The notes beneath the pieces were generated by a model that did not search any database, had not been told where the DNA came from, and saw only the letters and a list, made by a program, of their open reading frames with translations. Below are positions 1 to 35,616 of a stretch of DNA of 64,000 nt, piece by piece (positions within the stretch are counted from its first letter, which is position 1; the number at the start of each line of letters is the position of its first letter). Made by a program: the position numbers and the translations under genes. The stretch is from sequence record OR228459.1, one strand, 5' to 3'.

Positions 1-2
1 CT

Positions 3-95
3 ATCCGCACGTTGAATGGTCAAATACAAGACATGAATCGTGAAATTGATCAACTAAAAGGGATATTGAAAATAAATGGAAACAACTACTTATAA
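3..95 (+). CDS. 3' end of an upstream ORF (partial, coiled-coil-like)
   Basis: Open frame from window edge (IRTLNGQIQDMNREIDQLKG...) to TAA at 93-95, overlapping the next start. Confidence 0.4.
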   Translation: MRTLNGQIQDMNREIDQLKGILKINGNNYL

Positions 96-708
96 GAAAG
101 CTAGAACTGACGTTGATATAGACGTTCGCAATTCCAAAGAAGTAATTGAACAATTACCATGTGTGAGAAGTGTTGAAATCATTAATGAAGATGGTTTTCT
201 AGTACATAAGAGTGGGATTCATTTTGATAACATACCAGTAGACCCTATTACTGGATATGCGAGCATACCATATAAAGAAGCCGAAAGATTAGGATATCAA
301 AAGGTTGATATACTGTCTCAATCGGCTTATATGTATGTTCGTGATCGTGAACATTTAAAAGAATTAATGGCACGTGAGCCAGATTGGTCATTATTATTAG
401 TTCCAGAAATTGTTGAACAATTATCTCAGATTAAAAAACATATTTCATTATTACAAATATGGAAACCAAGTTCTGTTGACGAATTAGCTATGTTTATTGC
501 TATGATTCGTCCGGGCAAACGCCAATGTCAGAGCATGAATAGTTGGGATGAAGTTAGGGCTACGATTTGGGATTATAGTACAATAGGGCTTGACGGGGAA
601 GGTAAGAAACAACGTTATTTCAAAAAACCACATGCTTATGCATACAGTCTAATGATTGTTGTGCAATTAAATGCTTTAGTTGAGCATCTTATGTCTTCCT
701 CTTCTTGA
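76..708 (+). CDS. dnaE: DNA polymerase III alpha (DnaE)-like protein, C-terminal half of a split enzyme
   Basis: TDVDIDV (cf. PDFDVDF), HKSGI (HAGGV), KVDIL (KFDFL), IAMIRPG (ALFRPG) and FKKPHAYAY (FNKSHSAAY) occur in DnaE order. Confidence 0.8.
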   Translation: METTTYKKARTDVDIDVRNSKEVIEQLPCVRSVEIINEDGFLVHKSGIHFDNIPVDPITGYASIPYKEAERLGYQKVDILSQSAYMYVRDREHLKELMAREPDWSLLLVPEIVEQLSQIKKHISLLQIWKPSSVDELAMFIAMIRPGKRQCQSMNSWDEVRATIWDYSTIGLDGEGKKQRYFKKPHAYAYSLMIVVQLNALVEHLMSSSS

Positions 709-1042
709 GGGTAATATTTCTTCGTTTGATTCGTTTAGTTGGCAAATCACTAAGTGATATTGCCGGGCCTGATATAAAGGTGACACTATCGGTATTAAAA
801 CGTTGAGTATAATTTTCGTAAGTCTCCATCTCTTCTTGCATAAAGAGGCAGATGGGGATTGACCGATTGCTTTGCCACCACCAAGTATCAGCTAGATCTA
901 GCAGATCTTTTTGATGGGATTCTTCCATTAGATGGAAACAGTATAAAGTTGTATATTGTTTACTCTTAATCTTTATAATCCCATAATAGATATTCCCGTC
1001 ATGTTCCAGTACTGTAACATACGGTGGGTAAGTTTTACACAT
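689..1042 (-). CDS. hypothetical protein (probably late)
   Basis: ORF; start moved to ATG 1042 because a GGAG SD lies 8 nt upstream; TATAAATA on the minus strand upstream. Confidence 0.7.
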   Translation of the reverse strand: MCKTYPPYVTVLEHDGNIYYGIIKIKSKQYTTLYCFHLMEESHQKDLLDLADTWWWQSNRSIPICLFMQEEMETYENYTQRFNTDSVTFISGPAISLSDLPTKRIKRRNITLKKRKT

Positions 1043-1085
1043 TAATAGGACTCCCATAAATATTATATAGTTTAAAAGTACATAG

Positions 1086-1093
1086 TATTTATA
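1086..1093 (-). promoter_or_regulatory. T4-type late promoter TATAAATA
   Basis: Exact TATAAATA on the minus strand about 45 nt upstream of the 1042 start. Confidence 0.55.
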
Positions 1094-1104
1094 GAGGTAA
1101 ACTA

Positions 1105-2076
1105 ATGGCACATTACGGCGTTTATACGTACCCGACTAATAATGAAGTAGCACTTGGCAACTTCAACTTACCTTTCAATCAAGAAAAGGTTGTAATTTAT
1201 CGTGGTGCAAACAATTCATTATCCTTTTCAGTACATAACGCTGATGGTAAGTATACCTTACTACGAGACGATGAATATTTAATTTTTGCAATTTTTGATG
1301 CTCGAAACAATACAAAGATTTATGATGTATTGCTAGAGAAAATATTACCCTCATGGGTATCTGAAGCTGGTCAAGCAAGGCCAACATTAAGTAATAAGAA
1401 AAAAGTGTATTACGGTTGCGTAGTCCCTGCTGGCGTTATTCAAGATTTAAGCCCCGGTTCGAAGTATCGTTGGACAATTCACAAAGTTCGTCTAAATGGT
1501 GATCTTGTCGAACCAACAGAATTTCTGTATACTGGATTAGGTTTTGAAGCTAGTGCAGAATTGATTATTAGTGATCAAGCTGCACCGGTATTTGTTGCAT
1601 CCCAAGAGATTAGTGCGGCGAAGAATTCTTCATGGCTACCGATTGCACACAAATCAGAGCAACCCATTGCAAATGGGGTAAAAGGGGATTACGAAGTATT
1701 ACACTCTTCAGCTATACGTGCTGGTTGCCAGTACGGTTTGGTTGAGGGCTTAAGTACTATCGCATTCTATTTTCAAAACTTTATCGGTCGAATTCAACTT
1801 CAAGGTTGTTTGGCTAATAATTCTCCAAATGATAACGAGGAATACAAGTGGTTCATCATTAAGCTAGATGGAAAAGAGTACATCGAAAGTGGCTGGGATG
1901 AACATGGTGCACCAAAATCTATTGATGGAATCCAAGCCTTTAACTTCAAGGGGAATTATATGTGGGTACGTGCGGTTTGCTGCATCCCGCCGTTAGTACG
2001 ACACTATGAACCAAACGAGGTGGTCAAGTATTACGAACCGTTGAAGACTGTCCCTAAAATTTTAATCAGACGATAA
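1105..2076 (+). CDS. hypothetical protein, possible virion structural protein
   Basis: 323-aa beta-rich ORF with GAGG SD; no catalytic motif recognised. Confidence 0.6.
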   Translation: MAHYGVYTYPTNNEVALGNFNLPFNQEKVVIYRGANNSLSFSVHNADGKYTLLRDDEYLIFAIFDARNNTKIYDVLLEKILPSWVSEAGQARPTLSNKKKVYYGCVVPAGVIQDLSPGSKYRWTIHKVRLNGDLVEPTEFLYTGLGFEASAELIISDQAAPVFVASQEISAAKNSSWLPIAHKSEQPIANGVKGDYEVLHSSAIRAGCQYGLVEGLSTIAFYFQNFIGRIQLQGCLANNSPNDNEEYKWFIIKLDGKEYIESGWDEHGAPKSIDGIQAFNFKGNYMWVRAVCCIPPLVRHYEPNEVVKYYEPLKTVPKILIRR

Positions 2077-2078
2077 AG

Positions 2079-2109
2079 TTGGGATGAACCTGAAAAAATG
2101 TGATATAAT
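2079..2109 (+). promoter_or_regulatory. phage-specific GGGACA-class promoter (variant) upstream of primase
   Basis: TTGGGATGAA-N9-ATGTGA-TATAAT; 17-bp spacer. Confidence 0.7.
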
Positions 2110-2133
2110 CAACCTATATGCGAGGATGAAATT

Positions 2134-3192
2134 ATGAATCAGGTTCAAATTATTGTGGCAAACTTGATGCAAGATCCTGTACCAGCAATGGGAGCATGGA
2201 AGCATCATAATTGCCCTGCATGTGTATTCAAAGGTCAACCACGCCCTGATACACGTGGACGTGGGAACCACGTCTTTAATAATGATGGTGGAATAGGTTA
2301 TAACTGTTTCAACTGTGGTATTAAAGTAAACTGGCAACCCGGAAGGTATATGAGCAACGATATGGAAACGTTGCTCATTTCGTATGGTGCGTCAGATAAA
2401 GATATTGCCTTTATTAAACTTTTCATTGATGAAATGGTTAAGAGTGGAGAATACGAGGTTGAGGAATCCGCCTCGAATAAGTTATTCCAGCGAATAACAA
2501 AACGCGAGTTACCACCTGATGCAAAGAGTTTTGCAGAGTGGGCGAGTACTCCAGATATTGAACGCTTACAGCCTAAGTTCATTAGTGTTCTAGAAGCTGT
2601 TAATATGCGTAATCCATATCTACTGGACTTAGATATCTACTGGAGTCCATCAAAAGAACATCGTATGTATGATAGGTTTATTATACCTTATTATATGCAC
2701 GGTGAAGTAATAGGTTACACTGCTAGACACAAAGATATGGATAGTGATTATCGCTATGTCAATCAAGTAAGTACTAGCCTTCTTTATAACTTTGATTTGC
2801 TCAATGATGAAAGAATTAAAGTTATATTTGTGGCAGAAGGCCCGATTGATGCTGCCTTAATGTGCGGTGTATCTGCCAATAACTATTACCTCACAACTGC
2901 TCAAATAGAACTATTGAAAGCAGCACAACAAAGAGGTAAAAAAATAGTTATAGTACCAGACCGTGACAAAGATGGTTTGAAAGCGATTGACCAAGCAAAG
3001 GAACATGGATTTGCAGTATCGTTCCCTGATTATGGTACAGTCAGACAACCTGACGGAAGGGGAATCCGTCACATAAAAGATTTAGATGAAGCATGTGCTA
3101 AGTATGGTAGGTTATTCTGTGTGCAGTTAATACACGCTAGCATAGTAGAAGACCCATTTTACATTGAAGTACAAAAGGGCAAATGGATTTGA
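2134..3192 (+). CDS. DNA primase (T4 gp61/DnaG-like)
   Basis: Zn finger CPAC...CFNC, TOPRIM motifs EGPIDA and PDRDKDG; directly upstream of helicase. Confidence 0.9.
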   Translation: MNQVQIIVANLMQDPVPAMGAWKHHNCPACVFKGQPRPDTRGRGNHVFNNDGGIGYNCFNCGIKVNWQPGRYMSNDMETLLISYGASDKDIAFIKLFIDEMVKSGEYEVEESASNKLFQRITKRELPPDAKSFAEWASTPDIERLQPKFISVLEAVNMRNPYLLDLDIYWSPSKEHRMYDRFIIPYYMHGEVIGYTARHKDMDSDYRYVNQVSTSLLYNFDLLNDERIKVIFVAEGPIDAALMCGVSANNYYLTTAQIELLKAAQQRGKKIVIVPDRDKDGLKAIDQAKEHGFAVSFPDYGTVRQPDGRGIRHIKDLDEACAKYGRLFCVQLIHASIVEDPFYIEVQKGKWI

Positions 3193-3203
3193 GGAAAGAA
3201 TAA

Positions 3204-4748
3204 ATGGCTTTAGTAAACACGGACGTTAAACAATATGGAATTAACTATCAAGAGTATCTACTTTCACAGGTTCTAAGCAATCCAGACATTTTTGTACGTT
3301 GTAAGGGTATTCTTAAACCTGATTATTTTGATAAGGAATTTCATAGCAGTATTACTTTTGTGCATGAGCACTCACAAAAATATAATACCACTCCTACCTT
3401 AGATGATATTGAGTTTAAAGGTGGTTATCGTTATCGACATACACCTGTGGATGCATTAGGTGAGCAAGCAGTACTGGATGATATTGGTCAGTTTTGTCGT
3501 CACAAAGCACTAGCTCTAGCAATTCAACAAGGTATGGAATTAGTAAATCAGAAGAAGTATGGTGGAATTGAAGAACTTATTCGTGAAGCAATGCTAGTAA
3601 GTGTTCAAAACGAATTAGGTCTAGACATTTATGAAAACCCAGAAGAAGTAATCCGTTCATTGAATATGAATCAAGGTTCATTCAAGACTGGTTGGGAAAC
3701 ATTAGATTTTAAACTATACGGTGGATTCGGTCGTCAAGAACTAGAAATCTTCGCTGCGGCATCAGGTGGTGGTAAATCTGTAGTACTACAAAACTTAGCA
3801 GTTAACTTCTCCAAACAAGGTAAAGTTGGTGCTTATATATCTCTAGAGCTAGCAGAAGAACTTGTTGCAGTTCGTATCTATTCAATGATGGTGAACAAAG
3901 ATAACAAGTCTATTAAATCTTCACCCGAAAATGCAAGTATTCAGATTAAACTAGAAGAGAAGACAAATGGTTCTTTACGTATTCATCGTATGCCAGAATC
4001 GGTTACTACCGTAAATGATATTGAAAGTTATCTTCGTGAACTACAAATTAAAACTGGTCTAAAGTTAGATTATGTTTGCGTGGACTATCTTGATCTATTA
4101 ACATCAGACCGTTGTGGCCCAAATGATAAATCTAATGCGTTCGTTAAAGATAAGTTTGTATCAGAAGAATTACGTGCACTTGCTATGAAAATGGATATCA
4201 CAGTCGTCACTGCTTGTCAGTTTAACCGTAGTGGTATTAGTGAAGAGAAGAAAAGCCAATCACAAATCGCTGGTGGTATTTCTAAAATCTACACAGCAGA
4301 TAACGTAATCTATATTGAAGCTCGCCGCGAAACTGGTGAAATGTGGTTCGACTTCCAGAAAACTCGTAACAGTGGTGCAGTAGGATCTCGTCTACGTATG
4401 TCATATAATACTGACAGTCTACGTGTACTTGACCATAGCATTACAGTACAGCAAATGGAAATCGATGGTTCTGGTTTCAAACACTCAGATGGTTCTAACC
4501 CTGCGAAAGTAGGTGGTGGAAACGTCACTGGAGCACCCGGAGTGCCACTACAGCAATCTCCAATGCAGATGCTACATAGTCACTTCCAAAGCTGTCAAGC
4601 AGCTTCTACGGCGGCTCCAGATGCCCCTGTACCCCAATCTCCCGGTATTCAAGATACTTCTAAATCATCTAGTATAAATACTACAAATGACGCTAGCATT
4701 AACAATGAAAACATGTTAGCCATCAGGAGTTTATTGAATAGGAAATAA
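3204..4748 (+). CDS. dnaB: replicative DNA helicase (DnaB/T4 gp41 family)
   Basis: Walker A ASGGGKS, ISLEL, VDYLDLL, TACQFNRSG, KTRN arginine finger; low-complexity C-terminal tail. Confidence 0.92.
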   Translation: MALVNTDVKQYGINYQEYLLSQVLSNPDIFVRCKGILKPDYFDKEFHSSITFVHEHSQKYNTTPTLDDIEFKGGYRYRHTPVDALGEQAVLDDIGQFCRHKALALAIQQGMELVNQKKYGGIEELIREAMLVSVQNELGLDIYENPEEVIRSLNMNQGSFKTGWETLDFKLYGGFGRQELEIFAAASGGGKSVVLQNLAVNFSKQGKVGAYISLELAEELVAVRIYSMMVNKDNKSIKSSPENASIQIKLEEKTNGSLRIHRMPESVTTVNDIESYLRELQIKTGLKLDYVCVDYLDLLTSDRCGPNDKSNAFVKDKFVSEELRALAMKMDITVVTACQFNRSGISEEKKSQSQIAGGISKIYTADNVIYIEARRETGEMWFDFQKTRNSGAVGSRLRMSYNTDSLRVLDHSITVQQMEIDGSGFKHSDGSNPAKVGGGNVTGAPGVPLQQSPMQMLHSHFQSCQAASTAAPDAPVPQSPGIQDTSKSSSINTTNDASINNENMLAIRSLLNRK

Positions 4749-4751
4749 TAC

Positions 4752-5033
4752 ATGTCGAGTGATAAGAAAACACTTCTTGATAGTATCTTTAACTATACGC
4801 CAGAAAAAAGTAAATTACAGAATTTTAGTACTAAAGCAGATCATGCGATTAATTCTGTAATTAATTTGCTTGAGTATATTGATACTGAATTTGGACAAGA
4901 CGATGCAGACGATCTTAAAAAGCGATTGTTTCTAAGTATTAAAAACAGGGATTATAAAAAATTCCAACGTGGATTAGATAACATAGCTCTTGATGAAAAA
5001 CGACAATCCAAGGGAGGACGATTAGATGAGTAA
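4752..5033 (+). CDS. hypothetical protein
   Basis: 93-aa ORF tightly packed after helicase. Confidence 0.7.
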   Translation: MSSDKKTLLDSIFNYTPEKSKLQNFSTKADHAINSVINLLEYIDTEFGQDDADDLKKRLFLSIKNRDYKKFQRGLDNIALDEKRQSKGGRLDE

Positions 5034-5190
5034 GAAACTCAAAGAAAATGCTTCTTCTGGTGCGACGAGTGCAGGGAGTATTGCATCTGTTAGTACTGGA
5101 TTACATTTTCCACTAATGAAACGTTTACCGAAGACAATACTCTTTGGTGGCTATACTGAAGTGAATATGGAGAAAAAAGATAAGAAATGA
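5026..5190 (+). CDS. small 54-aa protein not in ORF track (MSKKLKENASSGATSAGSIA...)
   Basis: GGAGG SD, ATG 5026, TGA 5188-5190 overlapping next ATG (ATGA); fills the gap exactly. Confidence 0.75.
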   Translation: MSKKLKENASSGATSAGSIASVSTGLHFPLMKRLPKTILFGGYTEVNMEKKDKK

Positions 5191-5588
5191 AACCATACAC
5201 ATTCTACACGATAAACACGATTGTAGATATTGGTGATGGTAGTACTCCCGCAATTATTGATGGAAAGTTTACTGGTGCGATGAATCTAACACGGATTGTA
5301 CAATCTGTGATGGAATATGACTATCCAATGATGGTCAGCATAGTAAGGAATGAAGTTGATTTGTCCAAGGGTAACAATTCTGATTTCTACGCATTACCTG
5401 CATCATGGGGTAAATGTATTGTTAGTACTTTAAAATTTGCATTACCTGTTGATGTGCATATACAATTGACTGGAATACCATTAGTACTCCCCACTGTAGT
5501 TAATAAAACGAGAATCACAAGATTTAATCTAGCATCAAGTACTCGTAATACAAGCATAACTAAACAAACTTTTTCTATGAGTAAATAA
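5187..5588 (+). CDS. hypothetical protein
   Basis: 133-aa ORF, ATGA coupling. Confidence 0.7.
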   Translation: MKPYTFYTINTIVDIGDGSTPAIIDGKFTGAMNLTRIVQSVMEYDYPMMVSIVRNEVDLSKGNNSDFYALPASWGKCIVSTLKFALPVDVHIQLTGIPLVLPTVVNKTRITRFNLASSTRNTSITKQTFSMSK

Positions 5589-30396: not shown

Positions 30397-32781
30397 ATGG
30401 CAAATTTTCAGCCTCGCTGGGACTTGAAAGCTGATACAACTGTGATTTCGGAAGGTGAGCAAACTTATGTTCGCATTCAATTAAGAAAAAATGATGACGG
30501 TACTAGCCTTGAGTATAAATTAAAAGATGAACAGTACTTAGAATTAACCTATACTATTTCTGGAAGCGGAGAAACATTAGACGAACGTGATTTTGAACTT
30601 TATGTTGGTGAAGATATAAGTAAGCTAGTTAATATTAAAGATGGTACAACGGGCATTAGAACAATCTTTGGTCAGCATGTAGTTAAATTGTCTAAAAAAC
30701 AATTCAATCTTGCTAGTAATACTCAAATAATTGATGTATACTATATGAAGTTAGTTTGTGTTGATGACGGTATTTGGGATGGCCCTGAAAAACTTCAATT
30801 CACATTAAACACAATGGATGAGGTAACATTAACAGATGACCAAATTTCAAACCAAGAATCAGCAGGTACTATTGGTAATAATCGAGTTGAAATAAATTAT
30901 AATGACAGTAATGAAATATGGGTTACACCAAGTGTGATTGCACGTGGAGAAAAGTACACGATTGGTGCGTTAGGATATGGTTCAGATAGTCGTTTATTCG
31001 TTGATTCATTTGGACGTACTCGTATTTTTGATGATGAAATTGATATCAATGAATATCCCAATGATAGCTCGAATCGAGTATTTTATCCTACATATAAAAT
31101 TGAAAGAATTTCAATGAATAGTATACCTACTGAACATATAACAGGTAGCGGTACTATTTTAGTTCCACAAACTTCAGATTTAATTGAAGAAACTGACATT
31201 GTTATTATGGATACATTGGGTAATTTTGTGAGTACTGGATTGAAGTTTAATGCAAATGGTCAAATATTACAAACTATGATATATGAATCAGACCCAATTG
31301 ATGCTTATTTCAGGGCGACGATTGTACCATTAACTTCCTACTATAAATCACCATCTGATGCATTTTATGTTGGTAAAAGATTCAAAGCATATCAAATGTG
31401 GGTTTGTCCAGATGATCACACATACATTAAGGGTAATGTACAACCGGGACATTTGTACCAATTAAAAGATAACGTTATCTATCCGTATGTTATTAAATCA
31501 GAATATATCAATGGTGTAGAATATGCATTATTCGAAGAAGAAATGTGGAATGATTTAGGTGTATATTCGGTTAAACTTGGTGGTGATATTATTAATCAAA
31601 CACGCCTATTCCGTATATTAGTAAATGCTAGTACAGGTGGTGGTATCGATTTTGAAACTGATGCCAACTTAGGTAGAATTCATGTTGGTGAGTACTTTGG
31701 TCATACAGTTTATCCTGTCATCAAAGCAAGTGGTACTTTTGTTACCTACCGAGTAGACTATGATTCATCGCCTGATGACATTAGAAAGTACGGTATTGAT
31801 TTAACGGCTGATGGATTTATGGTCGGTACTGCATATGCTAGAAGTAATGATTTCTCAGCTAACGATGATATTAAACTTGAATTTGATGTTATAGCAAACG
31901 AAAAGAGTGGTACAACTGTTACTAAACGATTCAACATTACAATTATTCGTGGTTTTGGACAGAACTTTCTAACTGCACACATTGCACCAAGTAAGACTTT
32001 CGAACGTGCATGGTTTGCTAGCATTGCAACATCAAACTATTATTTAAACAAAACTTACTACCGGGAAAGTGATGATAGATATGGAATACAAAAGATTCCA
32101 CGTCTGCTATTGAAAGAAAACTTTGTCTCCCAGAACTTTAATTTTGTTTCCATTAAAGAAACTAAAAAGTTGTTATCAAAGACTATTGTTGACCCAGATT
32201 TTGGTGCTCCAGTACCGAATGGTGTCTTCTCATTAGTAATGGGTAATTATAAGATAACATCTGCACTTGACAATCTCGGAAATGTGGTGTATGATTTACT
32301 CTACCGTGAACTTCATCCATCAGGTACACGTGTTGATGTGAGCATGAATCCTCATGTTTATACGACAACGAACAATGATGTGTTTGCTGAAATATTTGGT
32401 TTGCGTCAGAATGTATTCAAGGCGGTTGGGGAAGATGTAACAAACCTATACACTGACCCTGATGACTTCCGTGATCGTGCATTGGTAGTTCCTCCAATAG
32501 CTGGATTATCAGATGAAATGACTGATACAGTCCCACGTTTCATGAATCACCCGTATGAAGAATATGGTTTAAAACCACAATTCATGCCTATACTACCTGT
32601 TGCGTATTTCAAACCCGGTCAAGCAGAAGCATTCTTTACTAAACTTGTGCAAAGTAATGAGCACAGTACTTTAGTAAATACCGAGTTCGAAGTACATGGT
32701 GTGGAATTTACTTTCCACACTTCTGAATATGAATTATATGTGAAAGATAAATTTATTATTCCATTAGTAGGTAAGCAATAA
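30397..32781 (+). CDS. large virion structural protein (baseplate/tail-like, Calx-beta-like segment)
   Basis: Late promoter, GGAG SD at ATG 30397, beta-rich, DDGIWDGPEKLQFTL. Confidence 0.55.
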   Translation: MANFQPRWDLKADTTVISEGEQTYVRIQLRKNDDGTSLEYKLKDEQYLELTYTISGSGETLDERDFELYVGEDISKLVNIKDGTTGIRTIFGQHVVKLSKKQFNLASNTQIIDVYYMKLVCVDDGIWDGPEKLQFTLNTMDEVTLTDDQISNQESAGTIGNNRVEINYNDSNEIWVTPSVIARGEKYTIGALGYGSDSRLFVDSFGRTRIFDDEIDINEYPNDSSNRVFYPTYKIERISMNSIPTEHITGSGTILVPQTSDLIEETDIVIMDTLGNFVSTGLKFNANGQILQTMIYESDPIDAYFRATIVPLTSYYKSPSDAFYVGKRFKAYQMWVCPDDHTYIKGNVQPGHLYQLKDNVIYPYVIKSEYINGVEYALFEEEMWNDLGVYSVKLGGDIINQTRLFRILVNASTGGGIDFETDANLGRIHVGEYFGHTVYPVIKASGTFVTYRVDYDSSPDDIRKYGIDLTADGFMVGTAYARSNDFSANDDIKLEFDVIANEKSGTTVTKRFNITIIRGFGQNFLTAHIAPSKTFERAWFASIATSNYYLNKTYYRESDDRYGIQKIPRLLLKENFVSQNFNFVSIKETKKLLSKTIVDPDFGAPVPNGVFSLVMGNYKITSALDNLGNVVYDLLYRELHPSGTRVDVSMNPHVYTTTNNDVFAEIFGLRQNVFKAVGEDVTNLYTDPDDFRDRALVVPPIAGLSDEMTDTVPRFMNHPYEEYGLKPQFMPILPVAYFKPGQAEAFFTKLVQSNEHSTLVNTEFEVHGVEFTFHTSEYELYVKDKFIIPLVGKQ

Positions 32782-32790
32782 GGAGATTGT

Positions 32791-33099
32791 ATGTTTGATC
32801 CATTTTTTGACCCATCGGGTATGACTGATAAGGAATTACAACAAAAAATCTTTGATATGAGTAATCGTATAACACAAGCACGTAATGCTGGAATGCCATC
32901 AGACATGATAGTACGTATGTACCTTGTTATTGATGCATGTGATGAAGAAATGTTATTTCGTGCATCTAGAAAGGAATACGAACAACTCGAAGATGAAGAT
33001 ACATGTGTATTCGATACCGAGTCTTACTTGAATAAAGAAGAGGATAAGAATAAAAAACATGAAAGTCCAAGGAAACAGATATATAAATCAGGATGGTGA
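32791..33099 (+). CDS. hypothetical protein
   Basis: AGGAG SD; 102 aa. Confidence 0.7.
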   Translation: MFDPFFDPSGMTDKELQQKIFDMSNRITQARNAGMPSDMIVRMYLVIDACDEEMLFRASRKEYEQLEDEDTCVFDTESYLNKEEDKNKKHESPRKQIYKSGW

Positions 33100-33577
33100 G
33101 GTATACTGCAATTTAAATGCAGTAGTCTACGCTATGAATTGTGGTTCAGATTTGCAATATCTCAAATTAATGGAGATGGATGAATTTGAACGTGAAAAAT
33201 TCAATGATAACTGTAAGAAGTTTGGATTAGAATATCGTATGCTCGATTACACAATCGAGCACGATAAGAATCATGAGCTATGGCGATATGACCCAGCTTA
33301 TGATAATATAAATTTAGAAGAGTACTTTCTAAACTTGTGTGAAACTGATGCACAAAAGCAGAGAGTACTGGAAGAACTTAGCTTATATGAACAATACAAC
33401 ATGACTAAGCTACTACGCTGCATGATGTGGTTAGTTGATTACCTTGAAGAACATAATATCTTTTGGGGTTTAGGTCGTGGTAGTTCAGTGAGTAGTTATT
33501 GCTTATTTTTACTAGGATTGCATTTGGTTGACAGTCTTAAATATGAGCTTGATGTAAATGAGTTCTTGAAATGGTAA
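33059..33577 (+). CDS. dnaE: DNA polymerase III alpha (DnaE)-like protein, N-terminal half of a split enzyme
   Basis: RVLEEL...WGLGRGSSVSSYCLFLLGLHLVDSLKYEL...EFL matches the DnaE segment RL..EL...GPGRGS.AGSLVAYAL.IT..DP...L.FERFL. Confidence 0.8.
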   Translation: MKVQGNRYINQDGEVYCNLNAVVYAMNCGSDLQYLKLMEMDEFEREKFNDNCKKFGLEYRMLDYTIEHDKNHELWRYDPAYDNINLEEYFLNLCETDAQKQRVLEELSLYEQYNMTKLLRCMMWLVDYLEEHNIFWGLGRGSSVSSYCLFLLGLHLVDSLKYELDVNEFLKW

Positions 33578-33607
33578 ACTAACTGTGCTAATATAAGGAT
33601 ATATTTT

Positions 33608-34000
33608 ATGGCAAAACACACCTCTTATCGTGGTCAGACCATTGATATGGATATGATGAAATATCAAAATCAGACTGCGACTGCTCTTGGCAATGCAAAC
33701 ATGAATGCACGTGGTGATAAAATCGGTCAAGGTGGCACTGTCATCAAGACTCGTGAAGAACTACTTGCTGAACGTGAACGTCAAATGCAACTACCAGATT
33801 TCATTCCAGAACATACTAGCCACTCAGTAGCAGTACAAACTGCTGATGAAGGATTTGATGATTCTATGTTCGAACTACCAGAACAAGAACCGGTAGCTGC
33901 ACCTGTACAGCCTGTACAGGAAGCTAAAGAAGAACCAGCTAAAGAAGCAGTGGAGAAAGTTTCCCCACGCAGAGTACGTACTAAGAAAGACGGAGAGTAA
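33608..34000 (+). CDS. hypothetical protein
   Basis: 130-aa ORF, GNANMNARGD motif, acidic Pro-rich tail. Confidence 0.7.
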   Translation: MAKHTSYRGQTIDMDMMKYQNQTATALGNANMNARGDKIGQGGTVIKTREELLAERERQMQLPDFIPEHTSHSVAVQTADEGFDDSMFELPEQEPVAAPVQPVQEAKEEPAKEAVEKVSPRRVRTKKDGE

Positions 34001-34005
34001 TAATC

Positions 34006-34329
34006 ATGGAGTCAAAAGTTATTACAGCTTTTAAAGGTAAAGTTTTAGTTACCAATTTAGACAGTGGTGAACAAAAAACTGCTGGTGGTATTATTCTATC
34101 AGATGATGATGGTAAACTACGTGGTATCCATAGCCGTTGGGCTAAAGTATATAGCGTTGGTGAAGATATCACTGATATTAAAGAAGGTGAATGGATTCTA
34201 GTTGAACATGGTCGTTGGTCACGTACCATTACAGTAGATGGTATTCAAATGAACCTAGTAGATTATCCAAAAGGTGTACTATGTTCATCCCCAGAACGTC
34301 CAGAAGGTTATGTTGGACTAGGAAAATAA
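34006..34329 (+). CDS. groES: GroES-like co-chaperonin
   Basis: KVLV...EQKTAGGIILS mobile loop, KVYSVG, IKEGEWIL. Confidence 0.8.
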   Translation: MESKVITAFKGKVLVTNLDSGEQKTAGGIILSDDDGKLRGIHSRWAKVYSVGEDITDIKEGEWILVEHGRWSRTITVDGIQMNLVDYPKGVLCSSPERPEGYVGLGK

Positions 34330-34336
34330 TTCAAAT

Positions 34337-34360
34337 GCCCGAAGTTTTTCGGGCTTTATT
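34337..34360 (+). terminator. Rho-independent terminator
   Basis: GCCCGAA-gttt-TTCGGGC then TTTATT. Confidence 0.75.
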
Positions 34361-34374
34361 TTTGAAGGTACTTT

Positions 34375-34650
34375 ATGATCACAGAAGACGGTAAAGTAGA
34401 TTTTAATTTTGTTAAGTTAGAATCGAAAAACGGTAAGTTCTATTTTGAACATCCAAAAAATAAAAAATTAGTTTATGAAGTTAATCACGATCAATTCCGA
34501 ACGTTATTCGTGAAAATGGCACAAGATAATGCTCGTGGTATTGAGTTACCAAATCGTTCTAATTCTTTTGAGTACTTAATGAGTCAATTAGAAATGAACG
34601 AAGATCTATTTCAAGCAATGTTATACCCAAATGAAGATTGGACAATTTAG
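34375..34650 (+). CDS. hypothetical protein
   Basis: 91-aa ORF with GAAGG SD. Confidence 0.65.
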   Translation: MITEDGKVDFNFVKLESKNGKFYFEHPKNKKLVYEVNHDQFRTLFVKMAQDNARGIELPNRSNSFEYLMSQLEMNEDLFQAMLYPNEDWTI

Positions 34651-34659
34651 GAGTTAATT

Positions 34660-35616
34660 ATGAGTAATGCACTATGGACAGAAAAGTATCGCCCACAAGA
34701 TATGGAAAACTACGTATTCAAAAACCCAGCTTTTAAAGAAAAGATGGATGAATGGATTCGTACTGGTGATATTCCACACATTGGCTTTTTTGGGCCAGCA
34801 GGTACAGGTAAAACATCTGCAATCGGTGTTCTAATTAACGGCCTAGAAAAGAATGGTCACATTGATCGTTTTGACGTTATGGTACTTAACATGTCCGATG
34901 AAGGTATCGACGCAGTTCGTGAAAAGATTGACCAAGCAGCACGTCTAGCACCTAATGGTAAGTACCGCATCTTTGTACTAGAAGAAATGGAACAGATGCA
35001 CCAAAAAGCACAAGGTTCCCTAAAACGTACAATGGAAGACTATGCCGAAAATGCTCGTTTCATTCTAACATCAAACGAACCTCACAAGATTCTAAAACCA
35101 ATCCTATCGCGTGTTCAAACTATCATGATTGAGAAGCACGACCGCGAGGCGTATATGACTCGTGTAATCAATATTCTACTAGCTGAAAACGTAGACTTGA
35201 GTACTGATGAATCTATCGAACTTGTTGAAAAATACATCAATGCAACCTATCCTGATTTCCGTAAAACACTAAACACGTTGCAAAGCAGTATCGTTGATGG
35301 TAAACTACTAAAACTTGAGGATAGCATTGATAGCACAGCGAACTACCGTTCACTCATCATTGATGCACTAAAGAACAACAACATTCGTGAGATGCGTGAA
35401 CTCATTGTTCAAAACATTCCAGAAGATGAAATGGATGGGTTCTTTACATATCTTTCACAGAATGTTAAAATGTTCTCAGATGACGAAATCACTCGTATGA
35501 AGATTATCGTTAAAATTCGTGATGCAATGGTGAAACAAGCGTCTGTATCAGACCGTGAACTCAACCTAAGTGCATTGCTATGTGAAATCGACCTAATCTG
35601 CACAGGAAACTGGTAA
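34660..35616 (+). CDS. clamp loader AAA+ subunit (T4 gp44/RFC small subunit-like)
   Basis: LWTEKYRP, GPAGTGKT, LNMSDE, LEEME, FILTSN, ILSR. Confidence 0.92.
   Translation: MSNALWTEKYRPQDMENYVFKNPAFKEKMDEWIRTGDIPHIGFFGPAGTGKTSAIGVLINGLEKNGHIDRFDVMVLNMSDEGIDAVREKIDQAARLAPNGKYRIFVLEEMEQMHQKAQGSLKRTMEDYAENARFILTSNEPHKILKPILSRVQTIMIEKHDREAYMTRVINILLAENVDLSTDESIELVEKYINATYPDFRKTLNTLQSSIVDGKLLKLEDSIDSTANYRSLIIDALKNNNIREMRELIVQNIPEDEMDGFFTYLSQNVKMFSDDEITRMKIIVKIRDAMVKQASVSDRELNLSALLCEIDLICTGNW

Follow-up and report, generated by a model that had tools for sequence, protein, structure and literature searches.

The closest described system is a minimal Pol III alpha of phages that is split into two proteins encoded by distant genes (Iyer, Anantharaman, Krishnan, Burroughs and Aravind, Viruses 2021, 13:63; PMC7824862). 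In its passages on this enzyme, the article recognizes an N-terminal part that binds NTP and a C-terminal part that binds Mg2+ and the template, which together accompany a family B polymerase in jumbo phages of group 2.2, and it notes the absence of other Pol III domains from those genomes. The same passages suggest a role in the synthesis of one strand or in repair, and present the enzyme as a model of the ancestral polymerase (PMC7824862). Our literature searches found no biochemical or later experimental work on the split minimal Pol III alpha. The supplement of the paper on the Klebsiella phage fENko-Kae01 contains nothing on the two genes, a 2026 review of jumbo phages does not mention DNA polymerases, the paper on phage PaBG deals with other Pol III subunits, and the term "split DnaE" led to intein papers only.

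DnaE of cyanobacteria is likewise a family C enzyme made from two distant genes, but its halves carry intein fragments and are ligated to full-length DnaE, whereas the phage pair lacks an intein and is divided within the palm. The cyanobacterial split site also lies elsewhere in the protein than the phage one. Other polymerases of large phages are assembled from separately encoded fragments as well: the family B polymerase gp43 is split in some T4-related phages, and the multisubunit RNA polymerases are split in phiKZ-like jumbo phages. These enzymes belong to different polymerase families and, unlike the system considered here, keep their full domain sets.

The DNA analyzed here is a stretch of 64,000 nucleotides (henceforth the window) from the genome of the Klebsiella jumbo phage fENko-Kae01 (OR228459.1; 360,105 bp), corresponding to bases 218830-282829 of the record; bases 1-5000 and 32500-35000 of the window matched this phage at 100%. 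The nearest relatives of fENko-Kae01 are the Salmonella phages Munch, 7t3, PHA46 and SE_PL (99.4-99.7%), and further ones are the RaK2/GAP32/CBB/121Q-like jumbo phages; the phage belongs to the RaK2/GAP32/121Q-like group covered by Iyer et al. (2021). It encodes two stand-alone products from distant genes, comprising only the core and the template-binding part of the polymerase, beside a T4-like family B replisome. As far as the account in that article extends, the split enzyme of fENko-Kae01 is the split minimal Pol III alpha of Iyer et al. (2021), with no difference in kind. The finding is already known, having been predicted in 2021, and the GenBank record covers both genes: ENKO_357, the gene of the N-terminal half (N-half), is annotated as "DNA polymerase III subunit alpha", and ENKO_317, the gene of the C-terminal half (C-half), as "hypothetical protein" with a note citing an HHpred match of 100% to E. 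coli Pol III alpha. Relative to the passages of the 2021 article on the enzyme, our analysis adds rare fused forms from metagenomes, a phage of 141 kb that possesses both halves, and a separate conserved neighbourhood for each half.

Translation of the window reproduced both ORFs as the first-pass annotation had described them, in coordinates, ends and motif positions (Table 1). The C-half product starts METTTYKKARTDVDIDV and the N-half product ends GLGRGSS...NEFLKW; together they amount to 382 aa, and 32,350 bases lie between the two genes. Each of the half genes overlaps the end of the preceding gene, by 20 bases (window 76-95) and 41 bases (33059-33099), respectively, and this position of the starts suggests that each half is translated within its own operon.

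Table 1. Genes and motifs of the split polymerase and its neighbourhoods (window positions)
Feature	Position	Strand	Assignment and evidence
C-half gene, ENKO_317	76..708	+	210 aa; C-terminal half of minimal Pol III alpha; palm metal-binding strands and shortened fingers
DVDID (D12, D14, D16)	109..123	+	invariant in 25 sequences; aligns with "PDIDIDF" of M. tuberculosis DnaE1 412-424
YQKVDIL strand, third catalytic Asp D78	295..315	+	K76 and D78 invariant; D78 equivalent to E. coli D555
RPGK fingers motif	508..519	+	R145, P146 and K148 invariant; aligns with RPG of E. coli and M. tuberculosis DnaE
KKPHAYAY fingers motif	622..645	+	K183, H186 and Y190 invariant; equivalent to KSHxxxY of DnaE
Small antisense gene, ENKO_318c	689..1042	-	PHROG 11637 (1.9e-49); 3' end overlaps 3' end of C-half gene
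DnaG-like primase	2134..3192	+	conserved neighbourhood downstream of C-half
DnaB-like helicase	3204..4748	+	conserved neighbourhood downstream of C-half
N-half gene, ENKO_357	33059..33577	+	172 aa; N-terminal half of minimal Pol III alpha
GRGSS	33473..33487	+	Gly-Ser motif for nucleotide binding in the Pol-beta-like nucleotidyltransferase fold; aligns with the GPGRGS motif of E. coli DnaE
RFC-like clamp loader	34660..35616	+	conserved neighbourhood downstream of N-half

Both products fall into phage protein families annotated as "DNA polymerase", the N-half into PHROG 11127 (E 4e-82) and the C-half into PHROG 11778 (E 2.9e-103), and the matches of both halves are far beyond chance. The N-half also matches PF07733 above threshold (1.7e-08, profile positions 20-95 of 260), and a profile of 26 sequences of its family matches the Pol III alpha chains of E. 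coli, Thermus and M. tuberculosis in the PDB (best E 2.7e-04). Its residues ~95-172 are the nucleotide-binding part of the Pol-beta-like palm, while residues 1 to ~75 form a family-specific extension, missing from one of the fused proteins described below (P0359). A search of PDB sequences with the single C-half sequence gave no polymerase match, since the C-half is too diverged. The profile of 25 C-half sequences aligned with M. tuberculosis DnaE1 (E 0.034) as four collinear segments, all of them falling on catalytic or fingers motifs: DIDID at 412-424, the region from the third-Asp strand to RPG at 568-673, and KSH at 773-788. The fingers family PF17657 reaches 12.3 bits on the C-half, under the threshold, and the fingers region is shortened. 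The proposed alignment of both halves to E. coli DnaE stood for the N-half (hhalign, residues 317-396, probability 92%), whereas the C-half family fell into the same, correct register on the single E. coli sequence (535-642) with a weak probability of 3.7%.

The fold predictions agree with this assignment. The AlphaFold2 models of the separately modelled halves are confident, with pLDDT values of 92.6 (C-half) and 85.7 (N-half), and in Foldseek searches of the PDB the top ten matches of the C-half and the top thirteen of the N-half are all family C polymerases (Pol III alpha of Thermus, E. coli and M. tuberculosis, and PolC of Geobacillus; probability up to 0.99), followed by unrelated noise. 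The TM-scores are low (~0.35-0.49; C-half ~0.36), as is to be expected when small fragments are compared with a large, domain-interrupted template. Three features characteristic of family C were found: a Pol-beta-like palm with the GS motif, three catalytic acidic residues, and the RPG and KSHxxxY motifs.

The active-site motifs originally read from the letters of the window, namely DxD, the third Asp, RPG and KxHAxAY in the C-half and GRGS in the N-half, are present and invariant across 25-26 homologues. The invariant residues of the C-half (25 homologues) are D12, D14, D16, H44, G47, K76, D78, R145, P146, K148, K183, H186 and Y190, and those of the N-half (26 diverse homologues) are G137, G139, R140, G141, S142, S143 and V144. 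The YQKVDIL strand was placed by hhalign on the "VKFDFL" segment within E. coli 535-642 and by hmmsearch on 5lew 568-673, and a profile search aligned KKPHAYAY to "FNKSHAAGY" at 5lew 773-788. Counting on from the hhalign register of the N-half, D12 and D14 match D401 and D403, the catalytic pair in E. coli DnaE, a numbering that also draws on the established catalytic triad. The first-pass annotation had also expected the halves to abut, and they do so, without overlap or gap, both in the DnaE profile alignments and in the fused metagenomic proteins. In the alignment to M. tuberculosis DnaE1, the N-half profile runs to residue 406, two positions short of its end, and the C-half profile sets in at residue 412, its first four positions being unaligned; in the hhalign alignment to E. 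coli DnaE, the N-half extends to residue ~394-396. The split point is a loop of ~10 residues in the palm, between the nucleotide-binding loop and the metal-binding strand.

Bacterial DnaE (Pol III alpha) and PolC have the same palm, GS motif, three Asp residues, RPG and KSHxxxY, in the same order, but they are single chains of 1,000-1,400 aa, whereas the phage enzyme has ~382 aa in two chains, is devoid of the PHP, clamp-binding, HhH and OB parts, and has a thumb reduced to a tight hairpin and shortened fingers. That no PHP, clamp-binding or OB domains would be found in these ~380 aa was borne out by Pfam scans, in which neither half matched a PHP domain and no match to clamp-binding, HhH or OB parts appeared in the halves. 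As to the thumb, there are ~43 profile positions between the DxD and third-Asp strands, versus ~143 residues in M. tuberculosis DnaE1, and the AlphaFold2 model of the C-half shows a beta-hairpin where the DnaE thumb sits. Relative to DnaE, ~85 fingers residues between RPG and KxH are gone, and the C-half stops ~20 residues past the KxH motif, so the remaining fingers are absent.

We consider it likely that the two genes specify complementary halves of a single minimal nucleotidyltransferase core of family C, specific to phages and probably an accessory two-subunit polymerase; homology, abutment, conservation, co-occurrence and fusions all argue for the initial reading of the two ORFs as halves of a split minimal family C polymerase. 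In the predicted enzyme, the 172-aa product would contribute helices and the GRGSS loop that holds the triphosphate of the incoming nucleotide, and the 210-aa product would contribute the beta-strands with the metal-binding residues D12, D14 and D78, together with the shortened fingers (RPGK and KKPHAYAY). The cut would lie between the FERFL-like helix and the DxD strand, in a short loop inside the catalytic palm fold, so that neither half would form an active site alone and a post-translational, non-covalent association would be needed. The single active site would then be shared between the two subunits at their interface, and the enzyme would work alongside the T4-like family B replisome. 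Given the presence of that complete replisome, which comprises the family B polymerase with its exonuclease, a gp45-like clamp, a clamp loader, a primase and a helicase, and the lack of PHP, thumb, clamp-binding and OB parts in the mini enzyme, the latter is most likely accessory and poorly processive. As to its role, our preferred guess is that it extends primers synthesized by the primase encoded nearby, or else that it fills gaps and takes part in repair.

The main replicase is encoded outside the window. ENKO_293 is a family B polymerase of 1006 aa with an exonuclease domain (PF00136 1.8e-22, PF03104 6.4e-19), and a gp45-like clamp is annotated in the record. The record carries an LC-MS/MS note on the family B polymerase and on neither half, i.e. 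the halves were not detected in that assay; according to the fENko-Kae01 paper, LC-MS/MS also recovered non-structural proteins. The product of ENKO_310 (record 213711-214529), annotated as "nuclease", is a stand-alone 3'-5' exonuclease of the DnaQ/RNase T type (PF00929 5.7e-14); the gene lies 4.4 kb upstream of that of the C-half, and a UvsW-like helicase gene comes next.

Within the window, each half has a conserved neighbourhood of its own. The C-half was described from the outset as lying upstream of a primase-helicase pair, which ORFs, Pfam and PHROG matches confirm; the full order downstream of it, i.e. the antisense gene of PHROG 11637, a gene for a virion structural protein, the primase and the DnaB-like helicase, is shared with phages Paride, Atu_ph07 and Slicko01. 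Downstream of the N-half come a small gene, a GroES-like gene and the gene of the RFC-like clamp loader, as in Paride and Atu_ph07. These primase and clamp-loader neighbourhoods may simply be the core gene order of the phage group. In Slicko01 the clamp-loader block adjoins the C-half/primase/helicase block, whereas the two are far apart in the jumbo phages examined. In the protein encoded by the antisense gene (ENKO_318c), a WWW-x-SNR-x-IP motif is conserved and the C-terminal tail is basic; the protein matches no Pfam family. Paride, Atu_ph07 and Slicko01 each have a gene placed and oriented likewise; homology to ENKO_318c is clear for the products in Paride and Atu_ph07, while the Slicko01 protein aligns weakly. 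ENKO_318c may be an accessory factor or partner of the mini polymerase, or its position may reflect just conserved core gene order.

A more specific version of the proposed role, which we regard as rather unlikely, is that the mini enzyme is a dedicated primer-extension polymerase that takes primers from the primase and hands them off to the family B polymerase, in the manner of DnaE to PolC or Pol alpha to Pol delta, with possible proofreading by ENKO_310 and ENKO_318c as a possible third subunit. An exonuclease domain is already part of the family B polymerase, hence ENKO_310 could, speculatively, proofread for the mini polymerase.

The lack of the thumb and of most of the fingers that hold DNA means that templated synthesis is not assured. 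The halves could share one active site and yet be no template-directed DNA polymerase; the enzyme might instead carry out untemplated nucleotide addition or form a product derived from nucleotides, for instance in host takeover or counter-defence. The Pol-beta-like nucleotidyltransferase fold is common to many enzymes other than polymerases, and the missing thumb and ~85 fingers residues, as well as the missing clamp-binding and OB parts, would be in keeping with such an activity. Against it, the halves resemble Pol III alpha and PolC specifically and not other enzymes of the Pol-beta fold, the DnaE fingers motifs RPG and KxHxxxY are invariant, and both genes reside within blocks of replication genes; we judge such a non-polymerase activity to be improbable.

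Returning to the split polymerase, its two halves occur together in ~95 phage genomes, always as separate genes, which lie 4 to 182 kb apart where the pairs were located. Searches with tblastn gave 96 phage records for the C-half and 101 for the N-half, with nearly equal counts for C-half and N-half by host genus: Escherichia 34/34, Pseudomonas 11/11, Salmonella 8/8, Erwinia 8/8 and Klebsiella 11/10. At least six of the N-half matches are weak and partial and come from small unrelated records (Clostridium and Thomasclavelia phages and one fecal contig), and such weak partial matches outside the family account for the surplus of the N-half over the C-half. N-half matches by tblastn were also obtained in Salicola phage SCTP-2 and Vibrio phage 2.275.O. 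HMM scans detected both halves in Alishewanella phage Slicko01 (141 kb), with the N-half 11 kb upstream of the C-half, and in Ralstonia phage RsoM2USA, where they are 4.2 kb apart. The co-occurrence suggested by the first-pass annotation thus holds in relatives, and neither half is absent or degenerate: the two record counts (96 and 101) nearly coincide, the catalytic residues are intact, and Slicko01 and RsoM2USA extend the pattern.

The order of the halves differs between phages. The C-half precedes the N-half by 32-44 kb in fENko-Kae01, GAP32 and the PA5oct group, the N-half comes first in RsoM2USA, Slicko01 and XacN1, and in Agrobacterium phage Atu_ph07 the two are 182 kb apart; this variation rules out a recent insertion into an intact gene. 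The lengths are constant within the families (N-half ~170-190 aa, C-half ~190-215 aa). In Atu_ph07 (NC_042013.1), the RefSeq CDS of the C-half starts at locus base 5067 and omits the catalytic DIDID, while an in-frame ATG at locus base 4986 gives a 191-aa product that includes it (4986-5561); the start given in RefSeq is probably a misannotation.

We searched 1.84 billion cluster representatives exhaustively with HMMER and obtained 520 family members at E <= 0.001. Among the best 150 of these 520, nearly all full-length proteins have ~185-235 aa, and two are longer and turned out to be fusions, both on real metagenomic contigs and both with the N-half preceding the C-half across a linker of ~9 residues. 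In the first (P0267, 375 aa), residues 10-180 correspond to the N-half (36% identity, 9e-29) and residues 190-374 to the C-half (34% identity, 1e-28); both family HMMs and both PHROGs match side by side, and a single PF07733 match (residues 97-207, profile 12-121) crosses the junction, from GRGS through DxD. The second (P0359, 336 aa) has a shorter N-terminal part. The gene of P0359, on a JGI metagenome contig of 8 kb (1516-4181 region), overlaps by 4 bases the end of a gene for a 552-aa protein with a PF03090 replicase domain and a helix-turn-helix, and an endolysin-like gene is nearby. PF03090 includes plasmid initiators that make primers. The contig looks like a small phage or plasmid, on which the mini polymerase may be the sole polymerase.

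In a quick maximum-likelihood tree of the C-half domains, the two fusions fall into different, well-supported clades (SH-aLRT 97 and 98), each among stand-alone C-halves. This unrooted tree tentatively suggests two separate secondary fusions, and the nesting of the fused forms in clades of stand-alone C-halves is a hint that the family has long existed in split form. We rejected a fission intermediate, as the stand-alone C-halves nearest to the fusions have no N-half gene directly upstream.

The fused proteins also bear on whether the halves work together at all. The two proteins could instead act independently, one serving for example as a scaffold or a regulator, and their resemblance to complementary parts of DnaE would then be a historical relic; in cultured phages the genes indeed never stand side by side, and each belongs to a different conserved block. 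Yet neither half has a whole active site while the active-site residues are invariant in both, the co-occurrence is near-perfect, and fusions in the native order arose in two separate clades, so that we deem independent action very improbable and reject it. That the ORFs are decaying, functionless fragments of a captured bacterial dnaE, as could be read from the 2017 paper on phage CBB, which named a 172-aa protein (the N-half) "truncated" Pol III alpha, is hardly credible and is refuted by the conservation pattern, i.e. full-length families with hundreds of diverged members, invariant catalytic residues and constant lengths, and by the absence of stops or frameshifts in the window.

Covalent joining of the halves by a split intein has a precedent in cyanobacterial dnaE, where the products of two distant genes are joined by protein trans-splicing, but in the phage pair the part at the split end that does not align with the fused homologue is a single residue in the N-half and 10 residues in the C-half, which leaves no room for intein fragments of ~100 and 35 residues, and no intein end motifs are present at the split (the N-half ends FLKW and the C-half starts METTT), as the initial inspection had also noted; we reject trans-splicing, the chance of which we consider negligible. 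With no space for intein fragments, the halves would have to associate non-covalently, an assembly that we infer from the fused forms and the co-occurrence as well.

If the pair is active, it would be the smallest family C polymerase core, with ~380 residues and no thumb, PHP or clamp-binding part. It would also lead one to ask why a second polymerase, of the bacterial type, is retained by phages whose T4-like replisome is complete. The hand-off of primers to the family B polymerase, if true, would make the pair the smallest working family C catalytic core and would bear on the origin of the polymerase family. An active pair would be a useful model for the workings and the origin of bacterial replicases.
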